Source of the DNA: Orbicella franksi
Taxonomy: Eukaryota
Length of the DNA: 64,000 nucleotides
Direction: 5' to 3'
NCBI GenBank assembly: GCA_964199315.1
Contig: OZ116711.1
Coordinates: 21,886,001 to 21,950,000 of the forward strand
Shown here: piece by piece, positions 1 to 56,184 of the stretch
Layout of the letters: every line of letters begins with the position of its first letter
Numbering within the stretch: position 1 is the first letter of the stretch
Notes under the pieces: generated by a model
The model's input: only the letters and a program-made list of their open reading frames with translations
The model's database searches: none
Told to the model about the DNA's origin: nothing
Position numbers and translations under genes: made by a program

Positions 1-404
1 CTTAAAAGGAGATTCAGATAATTTTTTATAGGTCAAGCCACAGATAACTTTTTAATTCACATCAGAAGGGTGAGGAACAGGGCAAAGCAACACAAAGCAG
101 CGTTTTTGAAGGTTTTTCAGTAAAATCAGAAAATAAGAACGTTGACAAGAGTTTTAACATTCTAGGCCATAATATCATATGGCTTAAATTCTAAGTTCCT
201 ATCTTTCGTCTTTGTGGTTTTATATTGATAGAAATTTGCATATCTTGTGCTAAACAAACAGCATAATTCTGAGATGAATTTTGTTTCGGTTTTTTTCATG
301 GTTTGCTGGAAGAAAAGACTTTTATCGCGCGGTTTTAACAAATATGCGTAAGTCAGCAAGTTACTTTATTCACTAACTGTAAGCACAATAGAATTACAAG
401 GTAC

Positions 405-953
405 CTTAGCCGTCGAGGACGAATACGGATCATCCAGAATTTCCCAAACAATCGGCTGGTTTCTTTGCCACCACGACGAATTGGGATGATTGTAAAACCG
501 ATCTCGAGGCCTCTCATCCGCCGAGTTTTCATATTTTGGCCTAAAATCTAAGGCCTGCAAGTTTTCTTGAGCGTCCCTGTGTTTCGTGTAATTTGGCCAA
601 CAACACGATTCCATTTGTTGCTCATCTAAGCCCCAGTAAGCGAGCTCTTGCTCGAATAATGGACCGCAAATGTTTCGAGGACAGTGAAGTTTGCCCGTTT
701 GTAAATAGTTCAAAACCTGCGCGAAAACGCCTGGATGTCGATCGAAAAAATATTCCCCTGTTTCTGGATCGTAATCAAGTTTGCCTCGGTTCTCTAAGAT
801 CCTCGAGAGCGGAATATCTGGTATATTTCTCAGCGTACTTATGTACGGCTCAAAGAGTTTTCCTCCGACATTCAAAACAACACGATCTCGCATGTCCTTC
901 TTTGAAGCGAGGGCATCAAGCTTGCTCGTGTCTCTTCTCTCTAGAGGTGACAT
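405..953 (-). CDS. KCNC: Shaw/Kv3-family K+ channel paralog A, first coding exon only (T1/BTB domain); remainder lies left of the window
   Basis: ORF 366..953 encodes VVLNVGG...FFDRHPGVF...GKLHCPRNICGPLFEQELAYWG...MESCCW (HX5CX20CC Zn motif, Shaw-type T1). A phase-0 donor AAG|GTAC at 405/404 is at the same position as in the other paralogs. 183 aa in the window. Symbol is family-level. Confidence 0.9.
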
Positions 954-3900: not shown

Positions 3901-4106
3901 AAAGCCAAAATTGCGATGGTAGCTGGATCAAGCAGCCGAGAAAATGTTCTGCAGACAATTAGAATGTTTGCTCTTAAAAAGGTGGCAAACAGTCGTCTTG
4001 CTTTGATAAGTGGGCAGAACATTGCTGATATTTTTGACACTGCCTCAGAATCCACGTGAATGTTGCAACGATTGACTCGCGTCAAAATTGTTACGCACAT
4101 CAATCA

Positions 4107-4286
4107 ATAGAACGTTTTCACTCACGTGGCCAGGACACATGCACATTTATTGGAACAAAAGAAGTGTTCACCTAAGAAAAGAGTTCAACTCCCACAGGAT
4201 TAGTTTGGTACGCAAACAAGGCCCCTGTTTCATTGTTTTGAAACACCATTATGGCTGCTATGAAGTCAGGTGAAAAACCGCTCTAT
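4107..4286. mobile_element. About 180-bp MITE (ATAGARCGTTTTCAC terminal inverted repeats)
   Basis: TIRs atagaacgttttcac / gtgaaaaaccgctctat; second copy at 7991-8157. Confidence 0.7.
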
Positions 4287-4491
4287 AGCTGAAACTTTGC
4301 GCGGAATTTTTTTTAGAAGGGTTTTGGGGCAATTTCAGGAAGGCATAATTCAAACATTGCACAATGTGTCCGGGTATTTCTTTATATACAAAAAGAAGTG
4401 ATCTCTATATAGAACGGTCGATGAAATGGGTCTGCCATTCACCAGACACCTCTCCCACCACCTCTCGTCTCCTTGTGTGTCCGAGCTAGGA

Positions 4492-7400
4492 TCATACACG
4501 GGTCATATTTTGAATGTTGTCTCTTTTATGTCCTCTAATTGCCGACCTAAGCATATCATCCCTGCCTTCAGATTCCAACACGTTATTGCTCTGTGAAGGC
4601 GTAGAATGCTGCAAATGTTTCAATTCTTGGGGAGAATTGTTATCTGCATATTGCGAATTCCTTGCACTGTCTATACATTTTCTACCCTTTAAATCATCAA
4701 AAGATCCATTTGCTGGTGGCCTGTGTACCTTTTCTTCCGATCTCACCAGAGGCGATATTGGCAATGACGTAATACCTCTGTTTCCGCCAATCGCGTTTCG
4801 TCTCTTGCCTGGCGGAGTGTCACTGGACGCGAGTTCGCTTCTAGACCGAACCCGAGGCTCAGCCGAAAGTTTGTTGGGATTTTTCTCTTCGTTTAAGTTT
4901 TCTGATGATCTCCACGGCGGTGCAGGTTCTATTTTATTGTCTTGTCTTTCTTGTCCCTTTTCATCGTCATTGTAGTCTTTGCTAGAGTCAAACGTTACTC
5001 CTCGTAAATTAACATGAGCGTGACCGGAGTCACGGCCGTCACCAGGGTCACGCAGCGGCCGCATTTCATCTTCCGTTTTTTCGTCCGAAAGGACAGCTCT
5101 TCTACCCTCGTTATTTTTGTGTTCTGATGTGTTTGATTCATTTGACGATTCGTGCGTTCCACCGTATCCTTCCTGTGGCGAGGTTTCACTTGGAGATTTC
5201 CCAAGGATTCCACTCTCCCCCGCGCTATCCCCGTCGGTTGTCGTATAATAACTGTCTCTCTCTTTCTCGTGTGACGATACATCGCCGTTTCCACGGTTAG
5301 CTAGACGTTTACTTCCGCCTCGCCTCCTCTTGCGCTGACTCTGTCTCTTTCCCGAAGGGGTGGGTGCGGGAGAAATTGCCATTCGGCGGTGCGAGGGAGC
5401 CGTTATATGCAACATGACGTCACTGGCTCCTCGGAGGCCACTGGATATGTCCATTGCACTGCCCGTAGGTGGAGACGAAAATAACTCCTCTGCGCTCTTC
5501 TTCACATTGGAAGCATGTTCCACATCGGAGGTGTCCGACTCTAGCCGAGGCAACGTGGAGGGTGGCAGCACCGCTTCCCTACGAGTCGAGCGACACCGAG
5601 GAGTTATCGACGGATTCCGAAGACTCTTTCGCGGCAGAGGCAAGGTTTCGTTGCGTGGACTCGGATTACTGACTGCCTCTGAACTGTCCGAGTTTCCTTC
5701 GTTGTTGTACAAAGTCGACTCTGACACGAGAGCGCCTGCAGCACCAAGTAAAATCGGCGTGCGCTTCTTTTTAGGCAGTTTCAACTGCGCTTGCGCATGA
5801 GAATAAAACAAAGTGAAGTTGCTGCCAATCACAGACACAGGAAGTGCTACGATGAGCACCCCTACGCATGCGCAAATTGCGCCAAGAATCCTTCCAAGAA
5901 GGGACTTAGGATATGTATCACCATAGCCTACTGTCGTCATGGTGATTACAGCCCACCAAAAGGCTTCTGGGATGCTGTCAAAATCTGAATCCGATGGTGG
6001 CTTTAGAGTCTGCAGAAAAAAAAAATACAACCAAATAATAAAACCAAACTTTGATGGCTTTTGAAAGTACTTCTCAATGGTTTTCAAATAAATGGCCGCT
6101 CACCAGGATTTCCTCCACAAACATAACTGAAAGGTTAGGGCCGTATATTACTTCATAGTAAACTGTTCCATTATGGTAAATAGTAGCTTTCATTTGAATG
6201 GTCACACACTAAGATTTCATCCACAAAACTTAAAAGCTAGAACCACCTTGTATAGTATAATAAACAGTACCACATGAAAGTACTGCTCAAAGCTTTCATT
6301 TGAATGGTCACACACTAGGGTTTCATCCACAGATTAAAAAGGTAAAGCCGCCTTGTACACTCGGGGGGGGGGGGTACTCCCTTATATGAGCTATATAGGT
6401 ATGTACGGCCCCAAAGGGTATGATTTTTCAGCCGTTTTGGTCATAATTAGGGTATGGTTTTTGCACTCTAACCTTGATATGGGTATGTTTTTAAGAAGAA
6501 GCCACTTTTTCATTATTATCAAGTTAACAAAAGCCCTTCAAAAATCATGTTTACGGTGATTTAACATTGGTCTAAACTTTTTAGGGAACTTATTATGACG
6601 CGGTTCTGAAACAGGGTTTTAATTTAATGGTTAGGTCATAAATAGGGTATCGAATATTTGGTCAGGTCATAAATAGAGTAGGGAATATCGCAGATCTTGG
6701 TGAAACGGGGTGAAATGTCAACTTTTCTCACCTTTTCTGCATAGAAAACCAACGTCGAGAAAATGACCATGGGAATCAATAGGATAAGGACCAGGAGAAA
6801 TAACTCCCGTGCACTGGCTCTCAAGGTATGTCCAATCACTTGCATGCCACTCATGGTCCGAAAAAACCTGAATAACCGGAAAATCCTGATCAGTCGGAGA
6901 ACGAACAGAAAGGTTAGAGTGCCTGTCACTGTACTTGACAAGTTGACGTAAAGGGGAACCACTGATGTTATGTCGACCCATGTCATAAATGTTTTAAAAA
7001 ATTCGGGCAGTGAAGGGCATGTGCAAAGCCTGGCCAGAAAGTCGGCTGAAAACCACACCAGGTAGAAATATTCCATGCCCTCGAACAAAGACTTGTAGTC
7101 CTCACTCAGGTCTTCAATTGATTCCAGGCAAAATGTGAGCACTGATAAGACTATGACAATCAATGACACCATAGCAAACATCTGAAAAAAAAAAAGAGAG
7201 AGTAGAGATGTAATGCTGGTCTGTGCAGATCTCGGTGTGCTCTCATCCCCCCGGGGATGCCCCCTGTAATGGCCTATCGGGGAGGCTCCGCCCAAAAGGG
7301 GTTACCTTTCCTAGGGATTTCACAAGTTGGGGTATAGAAAAGGGTTGGGCAATCGGAATATCTTGACTCCGGCCACAAGATGAACTGAAAAAATAATACT

Positions 7401-10400
7401 TGTTTTTCTGGTTAACATCTCTTCTGGTAATGCTCGATGTTCCCCGGTAATGTTATTCATTAACTTCATTCGAAGGGTGCAGTTTTCTTAAGTAGGTACG
7501 TGAAAGAGGAACCCGTTTTCCAGTAAAAGGTTTACCAAAGGAGTACCTTCTCTGTCGAAATGGTATACAAAAGGACAAGGGGCTGAACCTCGGTGCGGAG
7601 CCTCCACGTAACAAAAAACTTTCTAGAGTATCTCCCCGGGCTCTCATCTCATTAGCATGTAATTCTTGGAGTTTCCTCCCGTGGGAAATGGAACGGACTT
7701 TTTGCTAATTTTGAGCCCAGTTTTCTCATACTTTTGAAAGTAATGTTCACGTCAGAATTGGTGAAACACTTTTTCTCTCCTCTCCGTCGTCTACTTTGAG
7801 AAAAATGACTTTATTAGAAACACACACTTGGTCGAATGTTTTCTTCCGAAGAGCCACGCGCCAAAATCGTGGTACACGGCGAATGACACATTTAATTAAT
7901 ATTCCTTAGCGGACTGTTTTCACGGGTTACAACTTTGTTAAAACAGTTGATGCAAGTCTAAATCAAATAGAAGGGCGTTGTACATCACTAATATAGCGTT
8001 TCACTTACGTACACATGCATATTTATTGAAACAAAAGGTACATAAGGAAAGAGTTCAACTCCCACAGGATTGGTTTGGTACACCAGCATGGCCGCCGTTT
8101 CATTGTTTTGGAACACAACCAATATGGCTGCCGTAACGTCATGTGAAAACGCTCTATAACGCCAAACGAGCCAATCCGCAGTCGAAGCAAAAATATCCAA
8201 CGAGTGACGGGTGCCAAAGGCGGGAAAAATAGATAACCTGAACCACGATTGATATAAGTTGAATTAAATTTAGCCGCTCCCAGCTGGTTTATCTTAATCT
8301 TGGTTACTATAAATTTGCGTTCATTCTGTTTGTATAGAGCACGTTGCAGAACAAGCGAATTCATGATTTTGGCTGAGTCAGTAAAAACCGTATGCGGCCT
8401 GCCGCCAAAAAGGCTACACTCGTTCAACTTCGTCACTTTTGTGTCTGTAATTTAAATTACAAATTACAAAGACTATTGTCGTAATTAAAAGTCAGTGTTG
8501 CTATCAGATTGTTAAATCGATGCCCCCGGGCTAAAATCAACCACATAGAGGTTTTTGTAGCCCTATAATACGAAGATATGTACTTTTTCTTTTTTCCGCG
8601 GGCAAGAAGACTATTTCAAAGACTTCCAATATTATAGTTGAACTGCTTAGTAGCTTTTGTCATCTGGCCCATCTATTGTAACAATTATAATCAAGGCCAA
8701 ATTTTGGCTGCAGTCAATTTGTGTACTTGCCACGGGCTTGACAACAAAGCCACGTTGTATGCAGGAATAATCTTTTTCTTTTCAGTCGCATTAAACCAAA
8801 CTACCTTTCTTGGAATATTTTGTGGAAAACAAAGTTAAGCATAATCTGTATATAATGCGAACCTCAAATTTATATTCCTTTCTTTTTCACTCAAGACACG
8901 TTATCGAAAATGGCGCACGTTCGACAAAACACTACCTTCTGCCTTCGTGTCAAAGAGCGTTAGTAACAATATTGCAAATAGACACGTATTGAATGGTTCA
9001 ACACGGTTATAAAGCTTTCGGTTTTAATTTAATACAAGACAAAGGTGTCAAGACTGGGGATTCGTGTGACCATATTTCGTACTCAGCTGGTGCCCATGAA
9101 TAATACACTACAGCAGGCAGCTAGTTGTGGTTCATTTCCTGTGCTACTGCATTCGAGATCTGTTAAAGTACTTGAATTGCTAACAGCCTTTGCTTCAATT
9201 ACATTCGCTGCGCATACACTTTTTTGTTATAAGAATATTGTTTTTTTCCGCCGAGGCTGAATATTCTTATTTTTCTGCCGATTTCAGGCTGACCTGATAT
9301 ATTCTTGTGAATATTCTTAGATTACAGCGTATGACATTTCTGTTTTCGAATGTATGAGGTGTCTAGACAGTGTTTTAAAAAGCATTTGGAGCCAGCCTGC
9401 AGGCAAAGAGGCCTGATATGACGTACATAACTTCTTGCAGAAATGTTTTTAGCATCGAACATACGACCAGTACAGATTTTGGTGCTTTTTGGCTGGTTTC
9501 ACCGTTAAGAGAAAGGAAGAATTCCATAGTTTTAGTTAGAAACATATAATTGTATTGTATTTACAAATTTTCAACACAAAAAATTATGTTCTTTTCAAAA
9601 TCTCAGCCTCAGGTTTTTTTTAAATATTCTTAAAATCTTCGATATTTTTATAAAATTTCTTATAAAAAATGTCAAACATTTTAGCCTCGATTTTCTTATA
9701 AATCATATATTCTTAGAAAAAAAAAGTGTATCAATAATACATATACTACTTCAAACACAAGTTTGTCAAATATTATTCTTCGTACATTAGTGTTAATATC
9801 ACATATATGAGACTTGAAAGGTAACATTCTGTTAATTTCACCGGTCAGTCGTTTAAATTGATTGTACTGAAATAAGCTCGCATGATGAAGGTTTGTTGTA
9901 AATAACATTGTACGAAATCAGCATACTGATTGTACTGAAATAAGCTCGCAAGGCAAATTTAGCATTAGAGAGTAAACAAATTGGCAGATGAAGGTTTGTT
10001 GCAAATAACATTGCACGAAATCAGTATACATGCATGTTTAACAGATTCGACTGTTACTGTTTAACGCTAAATATAACAGCAAAAACGATTGCGATTTCTT
10101 TCACTCTGAGATACTTGGAATACGAAAAATAAAAATACATAACGGTACCCTTATATCTAAAATAATGTGCAAGATGTATTGTACGACTCCACGACAGACA
10201 CTGAAATTGTTTGTTTTGAAAGCGGTAAAGCGTTTGAACTCCGCAGCTTTTTTTATGTAATATCGTCGGATAGAGCGAGTAATAGCACTTCGAGGGATGA
10301 TCGCAGTTCATGGCATATATAAAATGGTGTAAGAAAAATAATATTTACATGGGATGCATCGAAATTTGTCGCGTTAACACAAACATGGACCGCAACACAG

Positions 10401-12825
10401 GTTTCAATACTTTGCTTTCTCTTAAAACATTAATAATAAGTGTCGGCTGTAAGTAGCTTTGTTATACGTTCGTTGATTGCAATTTCGTGCCAGGGATAAC
10501 AGCCAATACGTCTTTTGCACCAATAAGAAAGTTTTCGCGTGGACAAGGAAAATAAACTATGAAAAAGAACATTTTGTTGTTGGAGTCATGGACATACCAG
10601 TGACTCTGTCAAATGCGTTTTATATATATAAAAAGCTCAAGATCGCGAAAAAAGTATTAAACTCGTGGACAGGTATGTTTTTGATTATTAAGTAAACAAT
10701 TTGACACGGATCTACTTTAGAGCAAGACCCAAGGCGATTCTTTATTTCACCTGAATACATATTAAAATTATGTTTCGCTGAAGGCTGATGAAAACAGTTC
10801 CTCATTTCTTTCCCCTGAAATGCACTGAAAATTTACAGATGGCCTTGAACTCGCGAGCGAATCAATGCAATTTCTTTTTTGATACTGCATAATTTTACCT
10901 TCAACGATACTTCCTGGTTTCGAGAAAAATCCTTGCAAACTCGACTGTAGATTTAATTTATATGAACCGTAACAGTGAAATGAGTCCATTTAGGTATTTT
11001 CAAATGATAGGGGTCGATCGATTCAAAGGAGTATTCTATCATTGCTTTCATTAGATAGTTAACAGTAAATATGAAGAAGGGGTCGAACTTAACTGTTATA
11101 TGTCGTGTAATAGGAAGTATGCCCTTTTTAGACTTTTAGAATGTATTTTGTTGTTCCCGCAGTAGACGGTTTGGCTATTGTTTATCGGAGCCAAAACATA
11201 TATTGTATCAAAATTGTTTCGACGCAAAATTAAAATGCACATTTCTAGAAATACTGGTGTTGAGCTGTTGTTGGTTCGATCTTAAGAGCCCGTTTTCAAA
11301 ATATCGAATGCAAAGCAAGTAGAGATAATAATATTTATTGATGAAGAAGAAATCGTCTACAAGATGATATTTCGCAAGCTGATGCAAACAGTTATTACCA
11401 TAATTAATAATGAGAGAATTTTCTTATAACTGCCATGTTGCTATAGCCATCGGGTTTCATGTCATCATTTTTAACAGTAGGCCATTGTGTTGACATGTTT
11501 TCTGACAGCGAAACGCGCTTAAAACTCAGAACGCGATTCTACATACACAGACAACAATGTTGACGAATTTTTAAATATAAATAACATCAAACAACACCAT
11601 CGCTTCGAGGCTTGGGTTCTGCAGTGAGATATGTGACCTCTACACAAGTTGGAAGCAAATTTACGTTTAATTTGACGTAGTCTGCGTTAAGATGACTTTC
11701 AATTTAAATGCTTAAAAATAAAAAAAATTGTTTTGAGTGGTAAATCGATACGCACTCCCACAAGTATTTTAGCTGTAGTTTCAAAACGCATCCACTTGAC
11801 AAGTCAAAATGCCAGCTCGATTTTTTAATTTGCATACGCGCAGAAACGTGCAAAATGAAAACCGAAAAGCAAACGAAATTCCGTCTTTAGGCACAAGCTC
11901 CGACTCTTATCGATTTAGCCGGAACAACTAAAATCACGATTTCGCACTCAAACGGTAGAAACTGACGACGGTTGTGCAACTACATCTCACTTCCGTCCTA
12001 AATTTGAAAAAAGAAAAAAAAAAAAAGTATTAAATTCGATCTATTACATGTAAATTAGTCGCCTGCCCTGGTTGAAGTAAAAGCGGAAAAAAAATCGCGA
12101 TACCTTCACAAGAAACTTGCTGAGTAAAATTGCTTTTATAAACATCAAAATTTTTGTTGTTATTATTATTATTTAATTTGCCTTTAGCAGTGAAATGAAA
12201 AAAGAAATAAGGTAAAATAATGTAGATTCCAAACCTGCGCGTATTTTGAAGAATATGGCTGCTCCAACATGGCCCAAATTTCTTTCTTCCATTTCGTTCT
12301 TGAAGATTCCTTGTGTCGAACTTTGAACGCGCTGGCTTCATTTTCAGATTCCTCGACGCTTTTTTGCAATCCTTCGAATGCCTTCAGTGTCGCTTGTGCA
12401 TCTCGATGCTGGGTATAATTACTCCAGCAACACGGCTCCATTTGAAGCTCGTCTATCCCCCAAAACGCCAGCTCTTCCTCAAACAGTGGTCCGCACACAT
12501 CACTAGGAGTATGAAGTTTGCCGGTCCGATAGTAATTGATAATGCTGGCGAAGACCCCAGGGTGGCGGTCAAAAAAGTACTCGTTGTTTTCCGGATCGTA
12601 CTCGGCTTGTTTAGAAGCATTTTCCGCGATCCAGGCTAGCCTTGAATCCGGTACAACCCTAAGCGTGCTTAAGTACGTTTCGTGGCGATAGCCGCCTACG
12701 TTGATAATAACCCGGTCCTTCGCTAGGACGCGCGCTGGCAACGAGTCTTCGAAGTTGGACTCGGATTTCGCCCGCGCAATTCCCAGTCCTGGCTCGAGCA
12801 TCGTTCGAGTTTGGTCCGTCTGCAT
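4492..12825 (-). CDS. KCNC: Shaw/Kv3-family K+ channel paralog B, 3 coding exons, about 852 aa
   Basis: Exons 12825-12235 (T1; donor CAG|GTTTGG), 7181-6732 (S1-S5; acceptor TTTCAG|ATG, donor AAG|GTGAGA) and 6009-4492 (pore [19 protein letters not shown]6, [15 protein letters not shown], long tail; acceptor CTGCAG|ACT). All junctions are phase 0 and the frame is continuous. Confidence 0.93.
6185..6358. repeat. 106-bp minisatellite, about 1.6 copies, in gene B intron 2
   Basis: agctttcatttgaatggtcacacacta...tttcatccaca starts at both 6185 and 6291. Confidence 0.8.
7247..7640. mobile_element. MITE of a CCCGGG-terminated family (related copies or ends at about 6359-6712, 18292-18611, 38244, 49564-49856, 59082-59341)
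   Basis: Ends read ccc(c)gggg...gagt..ccccggg; several copies share ctccc(a/t)tataaaa(a)ggacggg-like and gggagt motifs. Family assignment is by eye. Confidence 0.55.
7991..8157. mobile_element. Second copy of the 4107-4286 MITE
   Basis: Shares the core gagttcaactcccacaggatt..tttggtac and the end gtgaaaacgctctat. Confidence 0.7.
9215..9673. mobile_element. About 460-bp MITE in gene B intron 1 (inverted sister copy 53671-54196 in gene D intron 1)
   Basis: Ends tacacttttttgttataagaa / ttcttataaaaaatgt. The interior (ccagcctgcaggc..agaggcctgatatgacg; ttagattacagcgtatgac) is reverse-complemented at 53.9-54.1 kb. Confidence 0.75.
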
Positions 12826-20283: not shown

Positions 20284-23200
20284 TCACGTCCGATGAGTCT
20301 GTAAGTCTGTTATTGACGAGAGGCCCGAACTCCGTGCTGTCCGACGTCTGGAGTACTTAGTTTCAACCGGTGACATTGGTTCCACGTTCTTTTTGGGCTC
20401 TTCATTCTCATTTTCATCTTCTTGTGTCTCCTCATCGAATGATTCATTTACCATTCCTCTACTATCTGTATTAAGAGTCACTGTTAATGTTGGTTTGACA
20501 AACCGGACTGCATGGTTCTTCTTTACTGGGGTCCCCGGTCTCCCAGGGGTTCCCGGTCTACAGGGAGAACCCGGCCGCGCACTGCCATTTACCAAATGTT
20601 CCTTGTTCTCTTTCTGTTTCATAGAAGCGAGCACGTTGTCGATGTCATCAATTTCGAACTCTTCACTCTCCCGGTGAACAATAGGCGGGCATTTTGGTGA
20701 TGATTGTTCAATGGGTTCATCTATAAATCCTGTGATAGCTTCCGAGAGCTCCGGTGGATCCACCGTCAAGGTATTCCCGTAGTGAGGGGGGCTTTTGGGA
20801 GGAGTGTCAATCGTAGTACTCTGAGTACTGGTGTGGCTCTTTTTTCTGTCGTCCAGAGGTGGACTGTTAACTGCAATGAATTCTTCACTGCTTCTAGAGC
20901 GAACTGGGAAAGACTGTCGATGAGCCATGCCCCCAGCGTACAAAGAGGACCGTGCTCGTCTAGCCCTAGAGAAGACGTGTAAATTATTTGTTAGTTCAGC
21001 AGGTAGCGCAGAGAACCCGGAATGATTTACTATTTGTTACACTGGATTAGAGGAGCTTATTTTGGCCACATAGAAAATCACCTTCAAATTGAAGTCATAA
21101 AGAGTCATTTAATAAGATAGAGAAGCATTATAGAGATAACAAAAAACCATAAAGTAACAAGAATGGTTAAGGATGGAGAAGATTGACACGGATTACAAAC
21201 GACGAAATTGAAAAATTTAGGCTTAACTTTTCAAGATGCACAAACCGTGACGTAGCTTCTTTAAAATATTTCAGTTACCTCCAAACGTTGATTTAGTCAC
21301 ACGGTATACGACGCGTGCGCATTTCATGTCCAATTCCAAATTATTGTCGCAATTCAAGCTTAAGGTGTCCCTGTAGTTTTACGATTGCCCGCGCGCATAG
21401 GACAAAAGCTCAAGTAATCTGCGCGCGCTCAAAGGAAAACGTAAGTGTTTTTCGATTTTTGTGACGTCAACATGAGGACAAAAAGCAAAACTGACAGTGA
21501 ATTTTCTCGGGTTTCCTTTGGTGATTTTTTTTTTAAATTTGGCTCAGTTGTAACCACATACAATTACTATAAAATACTCTACTTTTGTTAAAATCTGTCA
21601 GAGCTAATCTAATATATTTAGAAGAATGACAAATTACTGAATATTGGAAAAACCGTCTGAACAACCTTGACTTTTTAGCAATTCAAAATGTCAGGCAATA
21701 TCATTTCCATGATGTCGTAAAGTATGAAAAAATTTTACCGAAGGAAAATATAAATATTAAGGAGTTTAGGCCAAAATGAGGAATATATCTGCCTGTCATT
21801 AGATGAGATGTTGCCATGGTAACGGTCTTAATCCAAAAATTGACAACCAAAAAAATAAGCCTTATTTTAACAGTACCCATACTGGTAAATCTCGACAGGG
21901 AAAACTTTAAGAGAAATTAACTAAGTTTCCTTTTCTAACTCGCGCTCTATAGGGCGAGTGTTTGTAAATACTCTAGGAAGCCACCTTAAAGACGAAACCT
22001 TGCAAGCCGAATAAGTATATACCTGATACAGAATTTTATTATTGTTGTTCACAAGCCTGGTACCTCGTGTTTTGGCTTGCCGCTATGTTGGATAATGTTT
22101 CTTTACAAACGTCCTGTTCTTGCACTACGAAGTCTAAACGAATTCATGAAAATAAAAACTGGTAGTGGCCTGTAGCTGTCTGCGGCATTCCAGCTGGGGT
22201 TTTTGACGATAAGCCCTTTGCAGGACCTGGTCACTCCATGGTACCAAATCAGCCATGCTGGGACGCAAGTTACACAGTGAGACTTCCAAAACAGTGAAAA
22301 GTCAAGCTGGACTGGTGTGAGTTGCTTTGGTTTGAAAGTCCTACCGTGTAACATGCGTCCCGGCAGCATGGCTGATTTTGTACCATGAGATCGGATCGTG
22401 CAAAGAGTCTATCAGGGAGAATCCTTGTTTACAAAAATTGCCTCTTTAACATAAGCGATACAGTTTCTGACGGAGCTAAAGAAAGCATTAGCTCTGAATA
22501 TTGAACGGGCATAGCACGGTTAACTGTCTCAATGCAAGGAATTTGAGCCCGATGTATTGAATACTTTTTGTGCAACGCGGGTTAAAAAGCTCAAAATTTT
22601 ACAAAGAATGTATGAGCTCATTAGCGCTTTTGCCACCCATAAATTTTGCAGTTTTTGAAAGTCAATTTTTCCTCGAATTTTTACATCCAAAGAGTAAAAC
22701 ATTTTACCAATTACTAAGTTTCACAAGTTCTTTAAATGTTTGTAGTCAATTCATTTCTAACGTGATGCCTTCATTGTAAAAAGTCATATGTTAATGAGGA
22801 AAAGTACAAGCAATGACGTCATTGAATGCTGAGCTTACCTTCCCCGATATGGGTGTACTTTCGTATCTCCACCCAGAGATCCATTAACAACGGGTGACGA
22901 CTTTCTCGTTTCCAGCCTTCCCTCTGTCATATCTGTACTAGTCAGGTCCTCGCTTGGTCTTGCGGACTGCAACATCAAGGCATTTGCAGCACCAACCATG
23001 GGACGCTTTGATTTCTTAGGGAGTTTCATCTGCGCCTGTGCATGCGAGTAGTATAGTGAGAAGTTACTGCCGATGATAGAGATTGGAAGCGCAGTGATGA
23101 TGATTGACAGCGCGGCACAAAGCGCACCAAAGACTTTCCCAGTGGGTGTTATTGGAACATCATCGCCATAGCCCACCGTGGTGATAGTGATAACGGCCCA

Positions 23201-26200
23201 CCAAAACGAAGCCAAGATGGAAGAAAAGTCGTCGGGATTGGCTCTCTTCTCCGCCAGATAAGCACAGCTTGCGAATATAATAACCGGTACGATCAGAAGC
23301 AGAACCAGCAGCATCAATTCACGTGAGCTGGCGATCATTGTTTGCTTAAGAATCTGGAATCCAAGATTAACTTTAAAAAACCTGAATAGGCGGAACAACC
23401 GGCATATTGCTAGGATATCGTATTCGATACGAGGTTCCCCGTGCGGGTAATCATTTGTCGTTAAAATACGAACATAAAATGGCCAGATGGCAATAAAATC
23501 AACCCAGTTCATTATTTGCTTGACAAAGTCCTGTTTGCTTGGGCAAGTTGCTAGTCTGAGTGTGAACTCAATAGTAAACCAGATTCCGCAGACGCCTTCG
23601 ATAATTACCATGGCCAGGCGGGCTGACGTATTCCCAGATACCTGCTCAAGAGTTTGCACACAGTAAGCCAGGACAGACAGAATTATAAACATCAGTGACA
23701 CCATAAACATCATCTGTGAGCAAAGAGAGAAAATTACTAGTAAATTTTTATGATGCATAGATCTGTCTTCAACTCCATGAAAACTTACAGAGAGTTTTGT
23801 TAGGTAGAAAAGCACAACAGAGATGGTAATAATCACCCAAATTAGTACAAGAGTGCTTAAGATCGGTGGAGATCAATTGAGACGTAATATATCAAACACG
23901 AAAGACCGTGTTTAAGCACATTTCCAAATACCGAGAAAAGAGTAGAAAAAACGACATGTATTCGGAGCACTTTTGACTTCGAAGTATTTGAACATGTTGT
24001 TAGACACTGTCTTGAGTGTTTGATAAATCTTCTCAATCGAAACTAAACTAAAACAAAACACAATGCAACAAAACAAAAGGAAACAAAAACAAGATTGGAA
24101 TCTACCAAATGCGGTATCGTAGCAACCGCGCGTGTGCCCGCGTGCAAATGAAACACTGAAACACATTCATGATACATAGAAGCTCGAAGGTCCTGCTATT
24201 GTTAAAAAACTTATAGGCTCAAACAACACTCATAAGGATAAATCTGGTGTTAACTTTTAGTATCTACTTCTTCATATAGGTCCATACAGTATGCACATAG
24301 TATCCACAATTATAGTTTCACATTGCCTAATCCACCGAAACTTCTAATATATTGTCATTACTTTTTTTTTTATCTTCTACTGAGTGAAATCAAATTCTAC
24401 TCAATTGCAACAATGTAAACTACTTCAGATAAAGCTCTCTTTTGCATGTTATAGATGCAACCTTGAGAAACGTTTTGCTCAACGATTAGATTTTGATTAA
24501 GCTCTCTCGTCAACCAAATTTTTGGAGAAAAACTTTAATTTAACTGACAATCTGATGTGTCTAGTTCGCCAATATGGTGGCCATGAGATGATCTGAAACG
24601 AAAAGTTATGAACAGATTTTACCAAGAAGGTTAGTAAACGTTAGTTTTCTCCGCTTTATAATGCCGCAATAAGGTTCGACGTTTGACCCAACTGAGTTTG
24701 TCCAACTGAATTTAGATCTAAATTCGAATTAAGTTCGACGTTTGATCCAACGGTCAAGCGTTACCCGTTTGGTTCGACTCAAATTGCAATTTAGCGCGTC
24801 TCATGTGAAGTTCAACATTTGACCAGGACCTTAAGTGATACTTAAAGACAGTTATACTGTTCGAAAATTTCTCGGGCACTATGTATGTACTAACCTTACT
24901 TGTACGTACGAAAGTTGTGTAATTATTTTTTTAAAAACTTCATTTTAATTTGAAAACTATTATAACTGTTTGGGCTGGAAAACATGCTATAAATTTATAT
25001 ATTTTCTTGGTTTACTCGATCGCTTTTGGGTGATAAGTCGTTAGAATTTCAACGATGAAAACCAAGTAACGTTAGATCTCTACAAGTTGGCGAGGAAGCC
25101 TTGAACAGAAAGAACCTTGCTCAGGTAAAGAGACGAAATGGATTTGGCACTTTCGAACGTTTACTCAAGGTTTTCATGTTAGCTTGCTAGTTACGTAATC
25201 CTTCTCGTTCTTTCCATGCAACATTAATCATTCTTGGTTCTTTTTGGTTTATCATTGTCTTTCGATATTTTCAGTGGCAACTTAGGCACAATTAATAAAT
25301 AAAGAATTAGTTGCATTTGGCTGATGGAAATTACAATAACAGAGAAAATACAAATTGCAAAGAGAGAAAATAAACTAAAAATCCGGAACGACTTCAGCTA
25401 AACATCAAGAGGATCAAAGCCCAGTTTCCCTCTTTGGGTTCCCGAACAGGAATGATGAGAGCCAGTTGATTTTTGTAGTTTATATTATAATATTTGTATA
25501 ATAGTGTTTTTTTTTAGCATTTGTAACTAACGATTTTCCGTGCATAAATAAAGATAAATAAATGTTAAGTTTGGGCCAAAAATCAGTTATAAACGCACTT
25601 CACTGTCCAATGACAAAACTACCAAAAATTATCCCTTCCTCATTAAACAATAAGTCACAAACCAAACTGCTTGGTTTTCCTGTAAGGGGCACTTAACCAA
25701 ACCTAACAAGAAACTTCAAATTTTGAATTCCCTATGAGATTTTCCATATTTCAATGATAAAGTATTATTTTAAGTTTCGTTCTCGATTTGAAAGTAATTT
25801 TGATACAGTTCTTCATTTAATAGCAGAGTTAAGTAACGGTATGAAGCAAGGGCCGTGTACATCTAAAAACAGAGTAGGATTAATTTCAAATATTTTCTTT
25901 CATACGGCCATGAGGCTAAATCGCGGGGAAAACACGCTGGTATTAATCAGTAATTGAAAGCAATGTGGACACTGTGCCATGTTGGAGTTTAAAAGCTATT
26001 TTGCAATTAATTATTTATCAAGAAGTTACATGTTCAGCATAGGCGTTCGTTTAATGAAGAAAACAGATGCTCCTAGTATCAAAAATGAAAAATTATAGTT
26101 GTTCATCAGCCAGGTAATAAAAGTTTGTTCATCAAAATTATTTACGTGAACTTCAAATCAAGGTTTTATTAATTTTTTTGTAAAGGATTAGAAGCAAAAT

Positions 26201-26460: not shown

Positions 26461-28599
26461 GGGAACGAAAATTGTTACTTTTACTGGGTTGAAGAAGATT
26501 GACGTAGCGATGAAAATTTGACGACTTTTTAGACAAGGAAAGTGTAGAACGATAATTAATCCATTTTAAATGCCCGACTATGGCAGTAATTTGTTTATTA
26601 GAAGGCGTGCATGATTCAAATGTCCTGGTTCACCTAGAGACTAAATTGTAATTTACATCTGTGTGAAATTCTAAACCCAGCACCGGTAGTTGTAATTCTA
26701 ACGTTTTATTTTCCGTGTATATGTTAACAGTGTTGATAGAGAATTAAAAACAACATTAATAACCTTTTCAGAATTAAAAGCCCGGAAAGTACGTCTGAGA
26801 AAAATAATGTCACACGAGACTTTCTCAGTTAGGCCCTCGGGATGTTTATGTGACAGGCATTCGTATGAATATACCATCCTTTTGTAACTGTTTATCTTAG
26901 AATGATGAAAGATTAATCGTTCTAAATGTTGTTTTTACTTCAGATTAATAAAACTATGAAATGCCTCCGCTAAATTGTTGATAAACGAAACTGACTCATG
27001 AAAAGAGAACATCAAAAAAACATACATTCATCAAAGCGGAATTATAAATATAGTGCTGACTCTTTTGAGTTGAAGTTTTATCCGGTGATGCTTCTTTCAC
27101 AGCAAAGCTGTTTATATCGAGGTATATAAACAACATTTACATTTGGATATTTCAAATTCAGCTTTACTACATCTATATGGGGTAATATTATGTCACAACG
27201 CGTTTATTTTTTTGCCGGGAAAGTCGTGTATAATATCGATTACTAAATACTCTCTCAAAACTAAGAGCGAATAAATGCGACACACACTTTGGTTTGAATT
27301 TATTCAAGGGATAACTTAATGTACGATTGCTACACAGTTGTATAAATATATATGAATGTTTAAACGAAGGTTCTCAGTATTCATGACAAGTCAAGAAAAG
27401 AGTGAAACAAAAAACTAGAACGCGCGCATGCATTTCTCGAAAGGAGATTTGCCACAACAGATGTTTGGAAAATTCCGGGTTTAAACAAAAACTTTAACTG
27501 CCCGAAAGGAAAATATCACGATTATTGCACGATAGCAAGTTACCGCTTCATGAGAATTCACGTATTTTAGGGATATATACAATAATACAAAAGTAGATAA
27601 TTCTGATATCAGCTTTTCATAAAAAGGACTAGATTGATGAAATTATTTTTTTCCCAACAATGTCTCATTTGCCTTCGTGCTAAATTCAAAACGGCTGAAC
27701 CTTTTTTTTCTTTGTGATAATTATAATGTTATTTCTTGGGTTTGAACGGTTCGCAGATAGCATCATTTTAAGTAAAAACGAGTGTATTATTTCGAAAAAA
27801 AAAGATAAAACCAGAGATCGAATTTCACCGAGAACGGGTGGTGTTTTCTTTGCTCATTTCACAGACATTTCTAGCCTGTCAGCACGATACTTTCGAATTA
27901 ATTCATGAAACGCCGCCATAACTCCCAGTGTAGAAAGGAGAAACCGCGCGGCACGTTAAACACTCATTAATAACGGTATATATGATCACCATCCTTCCGA
28001 ACGTTTTTTCAAACAGATCTTCAGTGTTAAAACAAGGGTCTCAATCGACTTACCCTAGCTAGCTTTGAAGATCGCTGGTGTTCCAAGACGTTCCATATCC
28101 TCGGTTTGTATTTTTGCCAGCATGATTGTTCCCCTCCAAAATTCTCAGATACAATCTCGCCAAGTTCAGAATTGCAATCGTCATCATCGTCCGACATCTC
28201 CGCCGCTTCGAAAAACTTCAAGTTTTCTTGCGCTTCGCGATGCTGTGTGTAATACGTCCAGCAACATGGTTCCATCTGCTTCTCGTCGATCGCCCAAAAC
28301 AAAAGCTCATCTTCGAAGAGCGGTCCGCACACGTCGTGTGGACTATGTAGTTTGCCTGTGCGATAGTAATTTATAATGGCTGCGAAAACGCCTGGATGTC
28401 GATCGAAGAAAAATTCATTCCTTTCTGCATCGTAGAACTCCGCACTGTTATTTTCGTTTTCTATGCACCAGGCAAGCCTTGTTCCGGGGAAATTTCGAAG
28501 AGTGTTCCTGAAGGTTTCGTGTCGAACGCCGCCGCAGTTAATCACAATGCGGTCCCGTCTTGTAGGACTTGGAAGATTTTCTTCTGTTTCTTCGGACAT
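20284..28599 (-). CDS. KCNC: Shaw/Kv3-family K+ channel paralog C, 3 coding exons, about 700 aa
   Basis: Exons 28599-28054 (T1; donor AGG|GTAAGT), 23713-22839 (S1-S6, TITTVGYGDDVP; acceptor CACAG|ATG, donor AAG|GTAAGC phase 2) and 20965-20284 (acceptor CTCTAG|G; joins in frame to ORF 20284..20943). Total 2103 nt. Confidence 0.9.
21364..21985. mobile_element. TTAA-flanked non-autonomous DNA element (Kolobok-like) in gene C intron 2
   Basis: TTAA|GGTGTCC ... AAGCCACC|TTAA; related ends at 37840, 46073-46194 and 46211. Confidence 0.6.
22209..22412. mobile_element. Fold-back MITE in gene C intron 2
   Basis: Arms ccctttgcagg..catggtaccaaatcagccatgctgggacgca / tgcgtcccggcagcatggctgattttgtaccatg..gtgcaaagag. 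Confidence 0.7.
26403..26457. repeat. (TA)n microsatellite, about 27 units
   Basis: Direct reading. Confidence 0.95.
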
Positions 28600-37783: not shown

Positions 37784-38130
37784 GGAGGCAGCGTGGCCGA
37801 GTGGTTAGGGCACTGGACTTGTTTGAAAGTTTTGAAAATTTAAGGTGGCTCTGAATCCTATGTACAGAACGTTTTTAAACTTTGCCAAAAGTTAGGTCTT
37901 ATCATGCTTACTAAACTTTGATGATATAAAAAAAATGCACCGTGCCGTTTTTGAATTATAAGCTCCTAAAACTGTAATTAAGGGTGTTTTTAGCAAGTCG
38001 TACTGTTGCTCTGGTAGCCTATTGTGTCACAAAAATGATAACGTGTTCACCGATGATTAGGCACTTTTTAACTTGGAAAATATCTATTATTTTCCAAGTT
38101 GTAGTGGTGGAACGATTTCATTCCATCACG

Positions 38131-46194: not shown

Positions 46195-46496
46195 TTAAAT
46201 TTTCGAAAATTTAAGGTGGCTCTGAACCTACCTAAGATGCCTTGGAACACCAATGAAAACATGTAAATCGGACGAATTAAGTCGGGTTTGCAATGGACTG
46301 CCCGTTAAGTGACAAAACCTTATGTGATATTTTCTTTTTCATTTCGGTAGGAATATATGGGGAAACATCTATAGTGACAACACAGTTGCAAAAATACCCT
46401 GAAAGGGAATCAAGTTCAATATCCAGGTTAGCTTACAAAGAAATTTGACGTAAAGCGGCCTAAAATTTAGACGAATAAAAATCTGGTTTGATAAAT

Positions 46497-49932: not shown

Positions 49933-52900
49933 TTAAGCTTTAAATCCGTTTGCAAGGTCATGCTCGTTTCCCTTTCCCGTTCTGTGGTGGCTATCCCTCA
50001 CCACCGTCGACGACATTTCACTCTTATCAATACTGTTTTCACTAGGTAAGTTTAGAACACCAGCCTTGTCCAACCGAGTCATCTCAACGCCAACTTTAAA
50101 CGAGGGCACAGAGTATATTTGAGATGGGGATAAACTTTGAGGACTTTCTAACTCCAAAGCAGGATTTTTATAACTCCCCCGCGCGTCCGCGGGTGACACG
50201 CGGGCCTTGTTCCCGCGGGAACTTTGGGGGCGCCCGTTTTTCTGCGGAGAATTTTCAGTTTTTAATTCCACCCATGACCTGGATAGAGAGCTACTGGATT
50301 TTTTACGACGGGATGAAGGGATGGTGGTGGACATTTTCTTTCTCTTCTTCGTTCCACGGCGTTCGGAAAGAACCGACGGAGGTCTCGTGTCTTCTTCAAT
50401 GATTTCCTCGCTCTCGTGCATCGAGTTTATAAGTGTGAAATTTCTGGGGAGGGCGGAAATAGTAGGAAGTTCCTCCATTTCATGAGCCGATGGCAAATGA
50501 GCGATCTTTTCTGATCTGTTGTCCACATCCCCGCTTCCCACTGTTTCTTTTGTGGTTGGACTTTCTATCTTTGTTTCGCTCTCGCTTTCATTTTCATTTT
50601 CTTCTTCATTACACGTGTCATCTCGACGAACCTTGTTTCTCTCGTACTTGCTTGGACCGATATACACATCACCATGAGCAAAAAGAGTGTTTCGAGAGCG
50701 TCGATGATAGCGCCTAAACTTAGTAGCCGAGCCTTCTCTTGACTCCTGGGTCAACACCTCCGGCAATTGCCCGTTCTGTTGTAATGACGTGGTGCTGGTT
50801 GGTGACTGACCATGTCTAGGGTTCACGCGCAGTTTAGCCTCACAAATTAAGCGTCGCTTTTTCTTCGGTAGGCTAAGCCTGGCTTGTGCATGGGAGTAAT
50901 ACGTGGAGAAATTATTTCCTATCACAGAGACAGGCAAAGCTACGATGAGCACGCCGAAAATGGCGCATATTCCACCAATGATCCTACCAGGGATTGTCTT
51001 AGGCACCATGTCACCATAGCCAACGGTTGTCATGGTGATAATCGCCCACCAAAATGCTTCTGGGATACTTTGAAAATCAGGTTCACTTCCCTGTTTGGTT
51101 TCGATCTCGAATAAAACGCTGGAAAATACCACAACTGGAATTAGCAAGATTATCAAAAGAAGGATAAGTTCTCTGAAGCTCGCTTTGAGCGATTGCACGA
51201 TAATCTGCAAACCGCTTGTAAAAGCGAACACTTTCAATGCACGGAATGTTCGTATGAGCCTCACCGCTCGCAGAAAGTTTAGGTTTCCACTACCAAGAAT
51301 GATGTTTTCGTAAAATGGAAGCAGGGATATCAAATCGACCCAGGTCATGATTTCCTTAAAGAAAGCGATCTTGTCGGGGCAAAATATCAACCTGGCTCCA
51401 AATTCCAGCGTGAACCAGGCACAGAAGGCGTACTCAAACCCTTGAATGTATTTATTATTTTGGTCCTTTACAACCGACCAGGCACACATTGAAGCAACCG
51501 AGGCTAGAATCATGAACAGGGACACCATAGCAAACACCTGAAGAAAATAAACAAATTAAATGTGAAGGTAAGTTGGGTTGAATGTTCCTAAAGTAGATAC
51601 AGTGAACACCCCGTTAATAGGGCCACATCGTAATTGCGGCCGCTTTGTTCTGGCCCAAACAAAAGCTCAGTCAGTCATTTTGTTATTTAAAGAACCCCTT
51701 GAATCCGGCCACCCGTTAACACGGCCCCGCTGGAGACTGTACTTATTGGCAGGTATATTTATTAGTCTTTTGTTAAGTGTTCTATTGAACTACTGTTTTC
51801 GGTTGGTTTGGCTGAGCACATTGCAAAACTGTTTCTTAAAAAATTGATGAGCTGGACAACAACAACACCAAAAAAAAAAAAAAAAACTGCGCCCGAACAA
51901 CCATAGAAAACAAAACAACAACAAAAACTTATAGTAAGAATGAAAAACGTTCTCTTGTTAAAAAGATTAAAAACATTTAAAACATTTTTTAATCGTTTAA
52001 GACTGATAGGCGAAACTTCATGTTTTAACTCCTTTTTAACCAGAGAAAGTTTTTGTTAAAAGAAAGTTAAACGTCGAGTTTATAGTTGCGATGCACTCGG
52101 CTACAGCTAGCTAGTTTTCAAACATGCCACTTAAACTGAAAGAAAGAAATATTGCAAATAAACATAATAGGGTTAAAAATTTCAACTGATGAGAGGCAGA
52201 CCAGCTGGCTATTTACAAGCATGACCGAGGAGCTGAACTAGGTTCTACCAAGAAACAACTCCAGTTAAGTGGTCAGAGCGGGACTTGAACCCGCGACGTC
52301 CGGTTTTCAAGTCCGGCGGCCTCACCACTCGGCCACGCTGTCTTATCCTGGTTAATGCTCCGTTTTTGTGAACAACAACTTGCATGTGCTATATGTAACA
52401 GGACGCCAGTTTTAGAAAGCGTTGAATGTTGTCCGTCAGTACGTACGTGGCATGTTGGATAATCTAGTGTTCTTTCGAGTGAGGCCTTTGATTATTGTAT
52501 TTTGTCAAGTCAATGTTTTAAGCTTTCGCCGATCGACGGCATCATCGATCAGGGATAGAAAATATTTCGCTCTAAAACTATATATTGTAAGGCGGGTAAT
52601 GATGTGTGCAAGTTTTCGTATGCACGACTGATGAGTTTAAATAATACGTCATATATAGGAAAACTGAAGAAAATCTTCGAATCCCTTTTCTTTTAATCTA
52701 GCAGCAGGAATCTTTTTTACAAGTGTTTTTTTTTCTAACAAAAGGGGTCATCCTGCGAAATATTATGTATATGTATGTATGTATGTATTGGCATTATCGG
52801 ACAATCTAGTTCATATTATCATCATTACCACTGAACCATTTATTCAACATTGTTAAGAAGGAATCCTCCACAAGTGCGAGTAACTGAGGTGGACAAAAAT

Positions 52901-55900
52901 TGTACCAAGGTCATTTACATTGTTTTACAAACTTCTGTACGAGTGTTTTACATATCTTCTCAAAAGAAATCATTTCTAACAACACTAAATGACGAAAACA
53001 AATTTTGAAGTTCATATGAAACATGAGGTACTGGTGAAATGAAGCTGATGATGAAATTTTACCTGTGATGTGACAGTTTCCCTGAACTTTGAAATTTCAC
53101 ATTTTCTCGAGTCCCCATGGTAAATTTTATTGATGTTATTTCAGCGATTATTTATATGTTTGGCTTTTAGAAAATACAGAAAGGATTGTAATATACTTAA
53201 AGTTACTCTAGTACAGGGTTTTTGTCCATTAAAAGCTGATTTTCCCTCGGATTTCGTCTTAATAGTTTTTGCAACGTCCAAAAATTTCGCTGACCATACG
53301 CTTTCATTATTCCATTACCTTTTTGTTTCTTGATTTTGATTGCGCAAATGCGGAAGTGTTGGTTGGGGGCCCAAGAAAATTGTTTCCGCTTACAGTTCCG
53401 CGCAGCCGTTCATATAATTTATTGCGACAACTTTTCATCAGGCATTCTTTTCAAATTCTTCCCGGAACCTCAGTCAATTTTAAGAAATTGCTGGAAATGT
53501 CGCCCGGTTTACTCTAAAGAAAATATATTAAGGGGTGTTTTCCCAGTGTGCGGTGCTGGTAAATAAGGGGTGACAAATTCATCCTGTGAAAAATTAGATA
53601 TTCGAATTCTGCTCACATTTGCACTACGTAGGAGGACTAATTGTACGCTTGCGGCGAAAGTCTGAGACTTTAGACTCTTTTTTTTAAATATCTTTTATAA
53701 GAATATTGGGGCTGAAATTTGCGAAATCTTAAGAATACTTTAGGAATAAACCTGAGGATAAAATTTTGAAAAGAATATAATTTTGTATGTTGAAAATTTG
53801 TAAATATAATACAATAATATGTTAAATTTACGTAAACCGTTTAACATTCTTCCTTTTTCTAAACGGAGAAAAAAAAGTACTAGCCAAAAAGGAACAAAAA
53901 CAGCGCTAGCCGTATGTTTGATGCTAACACATTTCTGCAAGACGTTATGTGCGTCATATCAGGCCTCTATGCCTGCAGGCTGGTTCCAAAATTACGTACT
54001 TTAACACCATCCAGACACCAAATACATTCGAAAACAGAAACGTCATACGCTGTAATCTAAGAATGTTCAGTGGAATATTTTCAAGAAAATATTCATGAAA
54101 ATACTTTTCAGCCTAAAATCGGCAGAAAAATGAGATCATTTAGCCTCGGCCGGAAAAAAACAATGTTTCTATAAAAAAAAAAAAAGAGAGTGTGTATTTA
54201 CTGCACGCGCATAAAAACAATTTTGTTATTAGATGAACTTTCGTTTCCAAATTTGATGTCGATGCGAACCTAGCCTTAAATTAATTTGACACGTTCGCTT
54301 CTGAGCATTATGTGGTAGGTTGTGGCTAGCCACTTAGAATACATAAGTCTTTATATTTATTTGCAGAGGTTAAAATCTTAAGGGTATCACGGCCGTCATT
54401 GAAACTTGAACACACACAGAAAACAAGAATTGGCGTCTCTAATTTCAAAGTTTGATTTGTAAATATATATCTTGTCTGAGTTTTACGGTCGATAAGTATT
54501 CCTGCAAGAGATAATTCAACAAGCCACTAAAATTAATTCCAAAGTGGTTAAAAGAGGCGTGATTCACCATGACGAAGAAACTTTTCTTTTCATTTTACAG
54601 CAAAACTAGCCTGTAAGGTCAGTTTAATTTTCGTCCATTTACGATTTTACGTCTTTCGCTACTTCCAAGGTTTGTAAGGATTAGATAATAACAAAGCAAT
54701 ACTGATCTGATAGCAGACTTCGGTAGATAAAATAAACTACAGCTGAAGACCCTTCACTGGGAAACTAAACAGCTGCATAACAAAAAAAGGAAGACTCTAA
54801 TAGGTTCGTCAAGTTGTTTTTGTTCGTAATTTTTTATTCATTTTTTTTAAACACCGGAGGTTTCTGGAAAGATCTCTACACTTTTGACCGTTTACCTATT
54901 TTCCCAGCCTGAATTATTTTCTCTAACAATTAGTTTCCATAAATACGGAACTGGACCGCTTAATCTAGAATTCCCGCTGGTAAAAACCAGCCGCCCTAAT
55001 TTAAAAGTTGAACAAAGTGAGTAGACATTGAAAAACATGACTATGCAAAAAACACAAAGGCTATAAAAATATTGGAATATTAAAGCATTAATGCTTTCAA
55101 TTCGCTTCCAATGGGAAACTTTTATATATAGTTTTGCGTGCAAATAAGCAGGGCTAAACTTAAGGGGATTAAGATCGCATCAACCACATTTATAATTCTT
55201 CAAAAAACATTAAACTAGCCAAATTCGTCCATCTACACAAAAAGCCCCTGGATTTGCCAGCACTCCACGAAATCCTGCTTAAGAACATATTTTACGTAAT
55301 TTTAATATTGCTGTTTATATTTAATAATTCCTATTGTGTACAGGCGTTGTTTTTTTGTGTATTTATTCAGAGGTCGTGGGCAAAATAAATAATTCCCCAT
55401 GTATTCAACTTGCATTACGATAATTCAATTCATGGCGTCTTGTTTTATCAGAATAGATTTTTTACGTAAGGTAGGAAAATATTAAAACATTCGCGGGTTC
55501 ATAAAGGATGAGAACACTGGATTAGTGGAATGAAATACCGGTTAAGAAGCTAAAATCCAATATTTCTTCAGCAGCACTGGCAAAATTGAAAATGAGATTG
55601 TTTTCGGGATGGATTTAGAACTTTACTTTGCTGAAAAAAATTCAAAAAAATTCTACGTTTTTCTAAATATGTTTCGCTACCTTTGCCCTGGTTGATGAGT
55701 GAGCATCATCGAGCACAGCCCAAATCTTTGGTCGGTAGATTGTCCAACATGAAAGCGATGACATTTGGCGATACGATGAATCTAAATCTGGGGACGAATT
55801 ATCATCGTCATCATCCGAATCCTCAAACTCAGGTCCGACAAAATCTTTCAAATTTTTCTCAGCATCTCGATGTTGACTGTAGTACGGCCAACAACACGCT

Positions 55901-56184
55901 TCCATCTCTTTTTCTTCGATTCCCCAGAATGTTAGCTCCTCTTCAAAAAGCGGTCCGCAAAAATCCCTGGGAGCGTGCAACTGGCCCGTGCGATAATAGT
56001 TGAGAATGATACCGAATATTTTAGGGTTTCGGTCGAAAAAATATTCTTGCTTGGTATCCCCGTTAATGAAACTCCCCGCCAGCCAAGCCAACCTGGTATC
56101 GGGAATAGTTTGTAGAGTGCTTGCATATGTTTCATGGCGTTTTCCTCCAACGTTGATTATAATTCTGTCACTTTCGGTATCCAT
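49933..56184 (-). CDS. KCNC: Shaw/Kv3-family K+ channel paralog D, 2 coding exons, about 702 aa (possible 61-aa longer N-terminus from ATG 56367)
   Basis: Exons 56184-55681 (T1; donor AAG|GTAGCG) and 51537-49933 (acceptor TTCTTCAG|GTG; S1-S6, [34 protein letters not shown], long tail). Phase-0 junction. Confidence 0.93.
52170..52342 (-). mobile_element. Second tRNA-derived SINE family (head fragment also at 37785-37821, + strand)
   Basis: Minus strand reads gacagcgtggccgagtgg...ctTGAaa...gcgggttcaagtcccgc followed by a non-tRNA body. A and B boxes are present; the acceptor stem does not pair. Confidence 0.7.
53671..54196. mobile_element. MITE, inverted sister of 9215-9673
   Basis: Reverse-complement similarity along the length of the element. 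Confidence 0.75.

Follow-up and report, generated by a model that had tools for sequence, protein, structure and literature searches.

ShawR-type potassium channel genes with an altered S6 gate in a tandem array of the coral Orbicella franksi

The window analysed here, a 64,000-nt stretch of the Orbicella franksi genome (G000:C14:21886001-21950000), carries genes A, B, C and D of an array of Shaw-type potassium channel genes that extends into both flanks. All genes of the array lie on one strand, spanning 366-56184 (minus strand) of the window, and are the orthologs of ShawR2 (A), ShawR8 (B), ShawR10 (C), ShawR9 (D) and, after a gap, ShawR1 (E). Table 1 lists the exons found inside the window. 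The S1-S6 exon of gene A, with the gate sequence STSASVIG, sits just before the window (L008, G000:C14:21883975-21884559), and gene E lies ~31 kb past its end (L006/L037, G000:C14:21981291-21984288).

Table 1. Exons of the ShawR-type genes inside the window, with positions counted from its first nucleotide
Gene and exon	Position	Strand	Evidence
Gene B (ShawR8 ortholog), exon 1: start codon and T1/BTB_2 domain with H-x5-C-x20-CC zinc motif	12235..12825	minus	Pfam BTB_2 E 7e-29; GT donor right after ...SSKYAQ; AdShawR8 supplement row has the T1 string of B
Gene B, exon 2: S1-S5, S4 with five arginines	6732..7181	minus	Pfam Ion_trans E 4e-22; acceptor TTTTTCAG/ATG, donor AAG/GTGAGA
Gene B, exon 3: pore helix, TVGYG filter, S6, long C-terminal tail	4492..6009	minus	RNA contigs
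Gene C (ShawR10 ortholog), exon 1: T1 domain	28054..28599	minus	Pfam BTB_2 E 1.5e-27; donor AGG/GTAAGT; NCGGVRHETF string in common with EpShawR10 supplement row
Gene C, exon 2: S1-S6 core with TVGYG	22839..23713	minus	Ends at GTAAGC donor
Gene C, exon 3: C-terminal tail, completes 700-aa product	20284..20965	minus	Desmophyllum ortholog P0385 crosses the junction ...HPYRGR/ARRARSSLYAGG; join in frame
Gene D (ShawR9 ortholog), exon 1: T1 domain	55681..56184	minus	Pfam BTB_2 E 4e-27; SpShawR9 supplement row has the T1 string of D; RNA contigs span the 55681-51537 junction
Gene D, exon 2: S1-S6 core, TVGYG filter, C-terminal tail	49933..51537	minus	92% identity to a 700-aa Oculina patagonica protein; RNA contigs
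Gene A (ShawR2 ortholog): T1 exon, the sole A exon inside the window	399..953 (also given as 366-953)	minus	NvShawR2 T1 sequence match; NvShawR2 and SpShawR2 gate rows match

In A, B, C and D alike, T1 is encoded by an upstream exon of its own, and in all four genes the junction between T1 and S1 is a phase-0 intron at the same position, after ...SS(K/T/S)xA(Q/R/K), with GT donors and polypyrimidine-AG acceptors. The complete spliced products are 852 aa long for B, 700 aa for C and 702 aa for D. In B, an extra intron falls at the boundary between S5 and the pore helix (AAG/GTGAGA ... TTTCTGCAG/ACT). The apparent stop of C, an in-frame TAA at 22835-22837 (minus strand), is part of the GTAAGC splice donor. 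We also noted that many database predictions of C orthologs stop at ...HPYRGR and are probably ~226 residues too short.

For D, RNA contigs from three runs belonging to two studies contain the 51537-55681 junction exactly as modelled. The contigs covering this gene are 2354-2604 nt long with 0-2 differences and identical gate codons, and no variants at the gate codons of D were detected in four RNA runs. The last exon of B was present in contigs from 14 RNA-library runs, which suggests that B is expressed. RNA-contig cover was also seen within the 4.1-kb intron of D, at 51630-51815, 52188-52373, 52932-53117 and 53862-54233; the summed depth of these stretches, ~80 to 1100 as against 12-27 for the exons, probably reflects transcribed repeats with copies elsewhere in the genome.

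At the S6 gate, the sequence is PVSVIG in B (5824-5841, minus strand, aa 404-409; codons CCT GTG TCT GTG ATT GGC), PISIIG in C (23069-23086, minus strand, aa 392-397; context ALPISIIGSNF) and PVSVIG in D (50917-50934, minus strand, aa 370-375), as translated from the ORFs at 4492-6087, 22835-23836 and 49933-51537, respectively. The corresponding gate in Kv3.1 and in the Shaw alpha subunits is PVPVIV. The TVGYG filter is intact in all three genes, and in each the gate lies 31 residues past the start of the filter. The original prediction had pointed to 5810-5880, the stretch within which the gate codons of B fall, and had ascribed a P(V/I)S(V/I)IG gate together with an intact TVGYG filter to B, C and D; all three motifs were found, on the minus strand.

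Domain content, structure comparison and phylogeny agree with the earlier proposal that the cluster consists of Shaw (Kv3) genes. Pfam detected BTB_2 in every T1 exon of A-D (E 1e-26 to 1e-29) and Ion_trans or Ion_trans_2 in every core, giving the Shaker-like Kv (Kv1-4) organization of an N-terminal T1 domain followed by a six-helix core, with TVGYG in B, C and D. The T1 domains also carry an FFDRHPGVF...NYYRTGKLH signature. The intersubunit zinc motif H-x5-C-x20-CC, which is a feature of the non-Shaker subfamilies and is missing from Shaker/Kv1, was found in the T1 domains of A-E and, genome-wide, is conserved in every Shaw T1 exon that extends as far as the CC position. The best match among solved structures was human Kv3.1 (PDB 7phh, E 9e-50), whose PVPVIVNNF aligns column by column with PVSVIGNNF of D and on through the post-S6 LPKKK. 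In the tree, with two other Kv paralogs of the genome as outgroup, the genes formed a clade (100/99) that also contains NvShaw1 and an insect Shaw. The S6 flanks and the post-S6 LPKKK are shared by B, C and D with human Kv3.1, NvShaw1 and jShaw1; however, PVPVIV is retained in Kv3.1 and the Shaw alpha subunits, which assemble into homomeric channels, whereas B, C and D have serine at position 3 and glycine at position 6 of the gate. Some T1 domains of the array are themselves unusual. The T1 domain of D deviates at sites where the Shaw consensus is normally conserved, and that of A has KLFEPY and NYLQTG in place of the RHETY and NYYRTG of the others. These deviant sites could bear on T1 self-compatibility.

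A clade of 42 rows with 99/97 support unites A, B, C, D and E with a deposit named 'ShawR1 [Nematostella vectensis]' (UniProt A0A0C5GFJ1, P0277). Gene E pairs with this named NvShawR1 at 100/99 and is 69% identical to it, and the gate of the deposit is PVSVIG. The remaining names come from a survey of eight cnidarians, among them Acropora digitifera and Stylophora pistillata, in which ShawR1-R10 are named and their gates shown in figure 6 (Lara et al., 2023 GBE; PMC9989356). T1 strings in its supplement matched those of our genes, AdShawR8 corresponding to B, SpShawR9 to D, EpShawR10 to C, AdShawR1 to E and NvShawR2 to A. The supplement gives PVPVIV(N/S)N as the gates of NvShaw1 and NvShaw2, ALPISVIGSN for both NvShawR3 and NvShawR4, and STSASVIG for NvShawR2, and its supplementary table contains 33 occurrences of LPVSVIG, 35 of LPISVIG and 12 of LPISIIG (PMC9989356). 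Between the coral genes and Nematostella ShawR1-R10, which belong to the same clade and have the same T1 type and gate, we see no difference of substance. An article by Li et al. in PNAS (2015) is said to be the primary functional paper on the Nematostella ShawR subunits.

That a lost second proline and an altered gate mark regulatory Kv subunits, as the original prediction also held, is an already published rule (PMC6279357). Eight independently evolved regulatory clusters of mouse and Nematostella, one of them a Kv3 cluster, were compared by Pisupati et al. (2018 JGP; PMC6279357), and unusual substitutions in PVPVIV were reported for 42 of 43 regulatory subunits, while none of the homomer-forming Shaker-family subunits of the two species had an atypical gate. 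The second proline, P3, is lost in all nine Kv6-9 subunits and replaced by serine or threonine in eight of them, and the regulatory phenotype of each cluster, that of Nematostella Kv3 included, is reported to have been verified experimentally (PMC6279357). Both studies regard the gate changes as a marker of the R phenotype and not as its cause (PMC6279357, PMC9989356). The family, the motif and its meaning are already known, two corals included. R8, R9 and R10 may carry the 'R' label by clade membership only. The tandem order R2-R8-R10-R9...R1 is not discussed in the texts of Pisupati 2018 and Lara 2023.

To place the gate changes in time, maximum-likelihood trees were computed with the six gate columns removed. 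In a first, smaller tree, C was weakly placed on a long branch; its placement became firm once C orthologs were added. In the larger tree (54 rows), all rows with Ser or Thr at gate position 3 form one clade, with 99/97 support, and a single change is needed at this position. Because this clade holds together without the gate columns, the shared changes are taken to be inherited and not due to chance. Glycine at position 6 requires one to three changes, a range that arises because an R5-like lineage (PISIVN) and an R6-like lineage (PVSVVA) fall at the unresolved base of the R clade; the well-supported branches permit a single origin. C and D each have sea-anemone orthologs of their own in the tree, and the B clade (100/97) includes sequences from Nematostella, Hydra, Clytia and Hydractinia. 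The mutual identity of B, C and D is only ~40-45% over S1-S5, and they are therefore old paralogs. These results bear out the claim that the shared P-to-S and V-to-G changes predate the duplications, with one origin for the serine and one to three changes for the glycine. As judged from the trees, the gate changes date to before the anthozoan-medusozoan split and before crown Cnidaria.

A search of the 497-Mb assembly with the core of D and a Shaw T1 domain as queries yielded 11 Shaw-type genes, two of them alpha genes with PVPVIV and nine of R-type, in agreement with the 10 to 12 Shaw genes published for hexacorals (PMC9989356). Serine occupies gate position 3 in all nine R-type genes. Both alpha genes are on contig C6, one Shaw1-like (L003; T1 86% identical to that of NvShaw1; PVPVIVNNF) and one Shaw2-like (PVPVIVSNF), so the canonical partner does lie elsewhere in the genome, as had been anticipated, and these two genes are the likely partners of the R subunits. 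Seven of the R-type genes have a gate ending in ...IG, namely A to E and a pair at ~10.4 Mb on the same contig. The gate of the other two, a tandem pair on C4, is PVSVVA. This pair consists of L051 (G000:C4:30909000-30918999, ~7200-7800, plus strand) and L007, and one of the two genes has an intron that interrupts the filter (TTV / GYG).

These counts add one more stony coral in which about four fifths of the Shaw genes (9/11) are of R-type, and five ancient ShawR paralogs remain linked in one array. An annotation as Shaw-type regulatory subunits fits these genes, and 'subfamily A member 1-like' does not. The linkage of ShawR genes seems to be conserved in other corals. AdShawR1 and AdShawR8 are on one scaffold in A. 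digitifera, with protein accessions four apart; the B-like and C-like genes of Desmophyllum have the locus tags OS493_025046 and OS493_025044; and SpShawR9 of S. pistillata is on a common scaffold with a second D-like (PVSVIGNN) protein, XP_022798642.1.

The gate motif is strongly conserved beyond this genome. Among 258 proteins from the D searches, ~130 read P-[VI]-[ST]-[VI]-[IVM]-G, with serine in 127 of 133, and PIS(I/V)IG persists in C orthologs with as little as 56% identity, the one exception having serine at position 6. Among the paralogs of the O. franksi genome, the serine codons (TCT, TCC, TCG and TCA) and the glycine codons (GGC and GGA) differ synonymously, which indicates purifying selection. 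According to a published model, the gate changes of silent subunits drift under relaxed selection. The ShawR motif, P-[VI]-S-[VI]-I-G, is relevant to this idea: it is strictly conserved and looks selected and not drifting. We also noted five proteins of 800-1750 aa (P0122, P0125, P0206, P0207 and P0253) that contain three or four separate Kv-like stretches, with gates such as PITILG, PITIIG and PISILG; tandem genes may have been fused in these predictions, or the proteins may be genuine multi-repeat channels.

A similar gate was found in the KCNQ gene of this coral (FALPAGILGSGF, ALPAGILGSGF; L054, G000:C8:7470200-7480199, ~3670-4400, plus strand), in which an intron splits FALPA/GILGSGF. As in ShawR, the second proline is absent from the KCNQ (Kv7) gate, position 3 is occupied by a small residue and positions 6-7 are Gly-Ser. 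However, KCNQ belongs to another family, one that lacks a T1 domain, and the likeness, which covers three positions, may be coincidence. KCNQ channels conduct as homotetramers, and a gate of the ShawR type therefore need not be disabling. A literature search with the KCNQ gate string gave no match.

Taking these observations together, we think it probable that B, C and D are intact, transcribed ShawR members that are most likely silent as homomers and retune Shaw alpha channels in heteromers. Homomer silence and a heteromer-only behaviour are ascribed to the coral genes because of their orthology with the Nematostella subunits. The T1 domain, the voltage sensor and the K+ filter of ShawR subunits are normal; in the S6 activation gate, P3 has changed to serine and V6 to glycine. 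P3 is the second hinge proline (Shaker numbering, Pisupati et al.), and V6 seals the cytoplasmic end of the gate. Serine at position 3 and glycine at position 6 would alter the bend of S6 and leave one seal side chain fewer for each position that an R subunit occupies. As homotetramers, B, C and D would most likely pass no current. Through their Shaw-type T1 domains they would instead co-assemble with the Shaw1-like and Shaw2-like PVPVIV alpha subunits, with R subunits filling one or two places out of four and retuning the gating. The published model, in which atypical gates are tolerated in one or two of four subunits only, sets a corresponding limit on stoichiometry. A predicted complex of the Shaw1-like T1 domain with that of D scored 0.01, a value that counts neither for nor against binding. 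The vertebrate Kv5, Kv6, Kv8 and Kv9 subunits, which are related to Kv2, offer a parallel: they bear T1 domains, need an alpha partner, have serine or threonine in place of the second gate proline and are altered at position 6. They differ in their independent origin within the Shab/Kv2 subfamily, in having an aromatic residue at position 6 where ShawR has glycine, and in their partner, which is Kv2 and not Kv3.

The conservation of the motif could also be read in another way, with serine at position 3 and glycine at position 6 forming a working alternative gate, so that B, C and D would conduct alone or with other R-type subunits and their apparent silence in oocytes would come from a missing cofactor, such as a lipid, or a missing partner. 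The near-invariance of P-[VI]-S-[VI]-I-G in ~130 cnidarian sequences and the synonymous codon changes point to selection for the motif instead of decay, and the small non-proline residue at position 3 and the Gly-Ser at positions 6-7 recur in the coral KCNQ gate. However, the KCNQ resemblance is confined to three positions, NvShawR1, which has the same gate, was deposited and described by its authors as a regulatory subunit, and of the Shaker-family subunits of mouse and Nematostella that form homomers, none has an atypical gate (PMC6279357). Among the sequences and papers examined, no functional homomeric cnidarian Shaw channel with a PVS-IG gate came up; jShaw1, a functional homomeric jellyfish Shaw channel and the reported ortholog of NvShaw1, was judged for this purpose through the PVPVIV gate of NvShaw1. 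We consider such a working gate unlikely. A version in which the ShawR gate would be a selected, KCNQ-like alternative held for >500 million years, with R-R conducting channels or cofactor-dependent Shaw gating as its consequence, strikes us as unlikely too.

Two further readings are harder to maintain. Convergence, with P-to-S and V-to-G arising separately in each paralog during a recent local amplification, would be easy at the level of the codon, as both changes are single-base steps (CCN to TCN and GTN to GGN). At position 3 it was rejected by the single change on the gate-free tree, with its 99/97 support, and neither the ~40-45% identity of B, C and D over S1-S5 nor the presence of sea-anemone orthologs for each, and of hydrozoan members in the B clade, fits a recent amplification; we regard this origin as very improbable. 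It is hardly credible that B, C and D are decaying duplicates, that is, pseudogenes whose gate changes are mere damage. The long low-complexity C-terminal tails, and a gate that is non-canonical although the motif is normally invariant, could give that impression, but the reading was discarded since the ORFs are intact over canonical, phase-matched introns and polyA RNA contigs of several studies contain D in spliced form. The 14 RNA-library runs with contigs of the last exon of B also stand against it, as do ortholog identities of 80-93% across coral families and the recognisable hydrozoan orthologs. The reading of B, C and D as silent regulatory subunits of Shaw channels remains the one that we favour.

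Finally, we noted two features on the plus strand of the window that are separate from the channel genes. At 37347-37843, overlapping ORFs encode an integrase-like zinc-binding motif, H...H...C..C ('HAGVNSTLNALRLRYWIPPGRLHVKNAITHCVTCEK'), and are probably a retrotransposon remnant. Between C and D, at 46488-47501, an intronless ORF encodes a 337-aa protein with ~9 tandem C2H2 zinc fingers.
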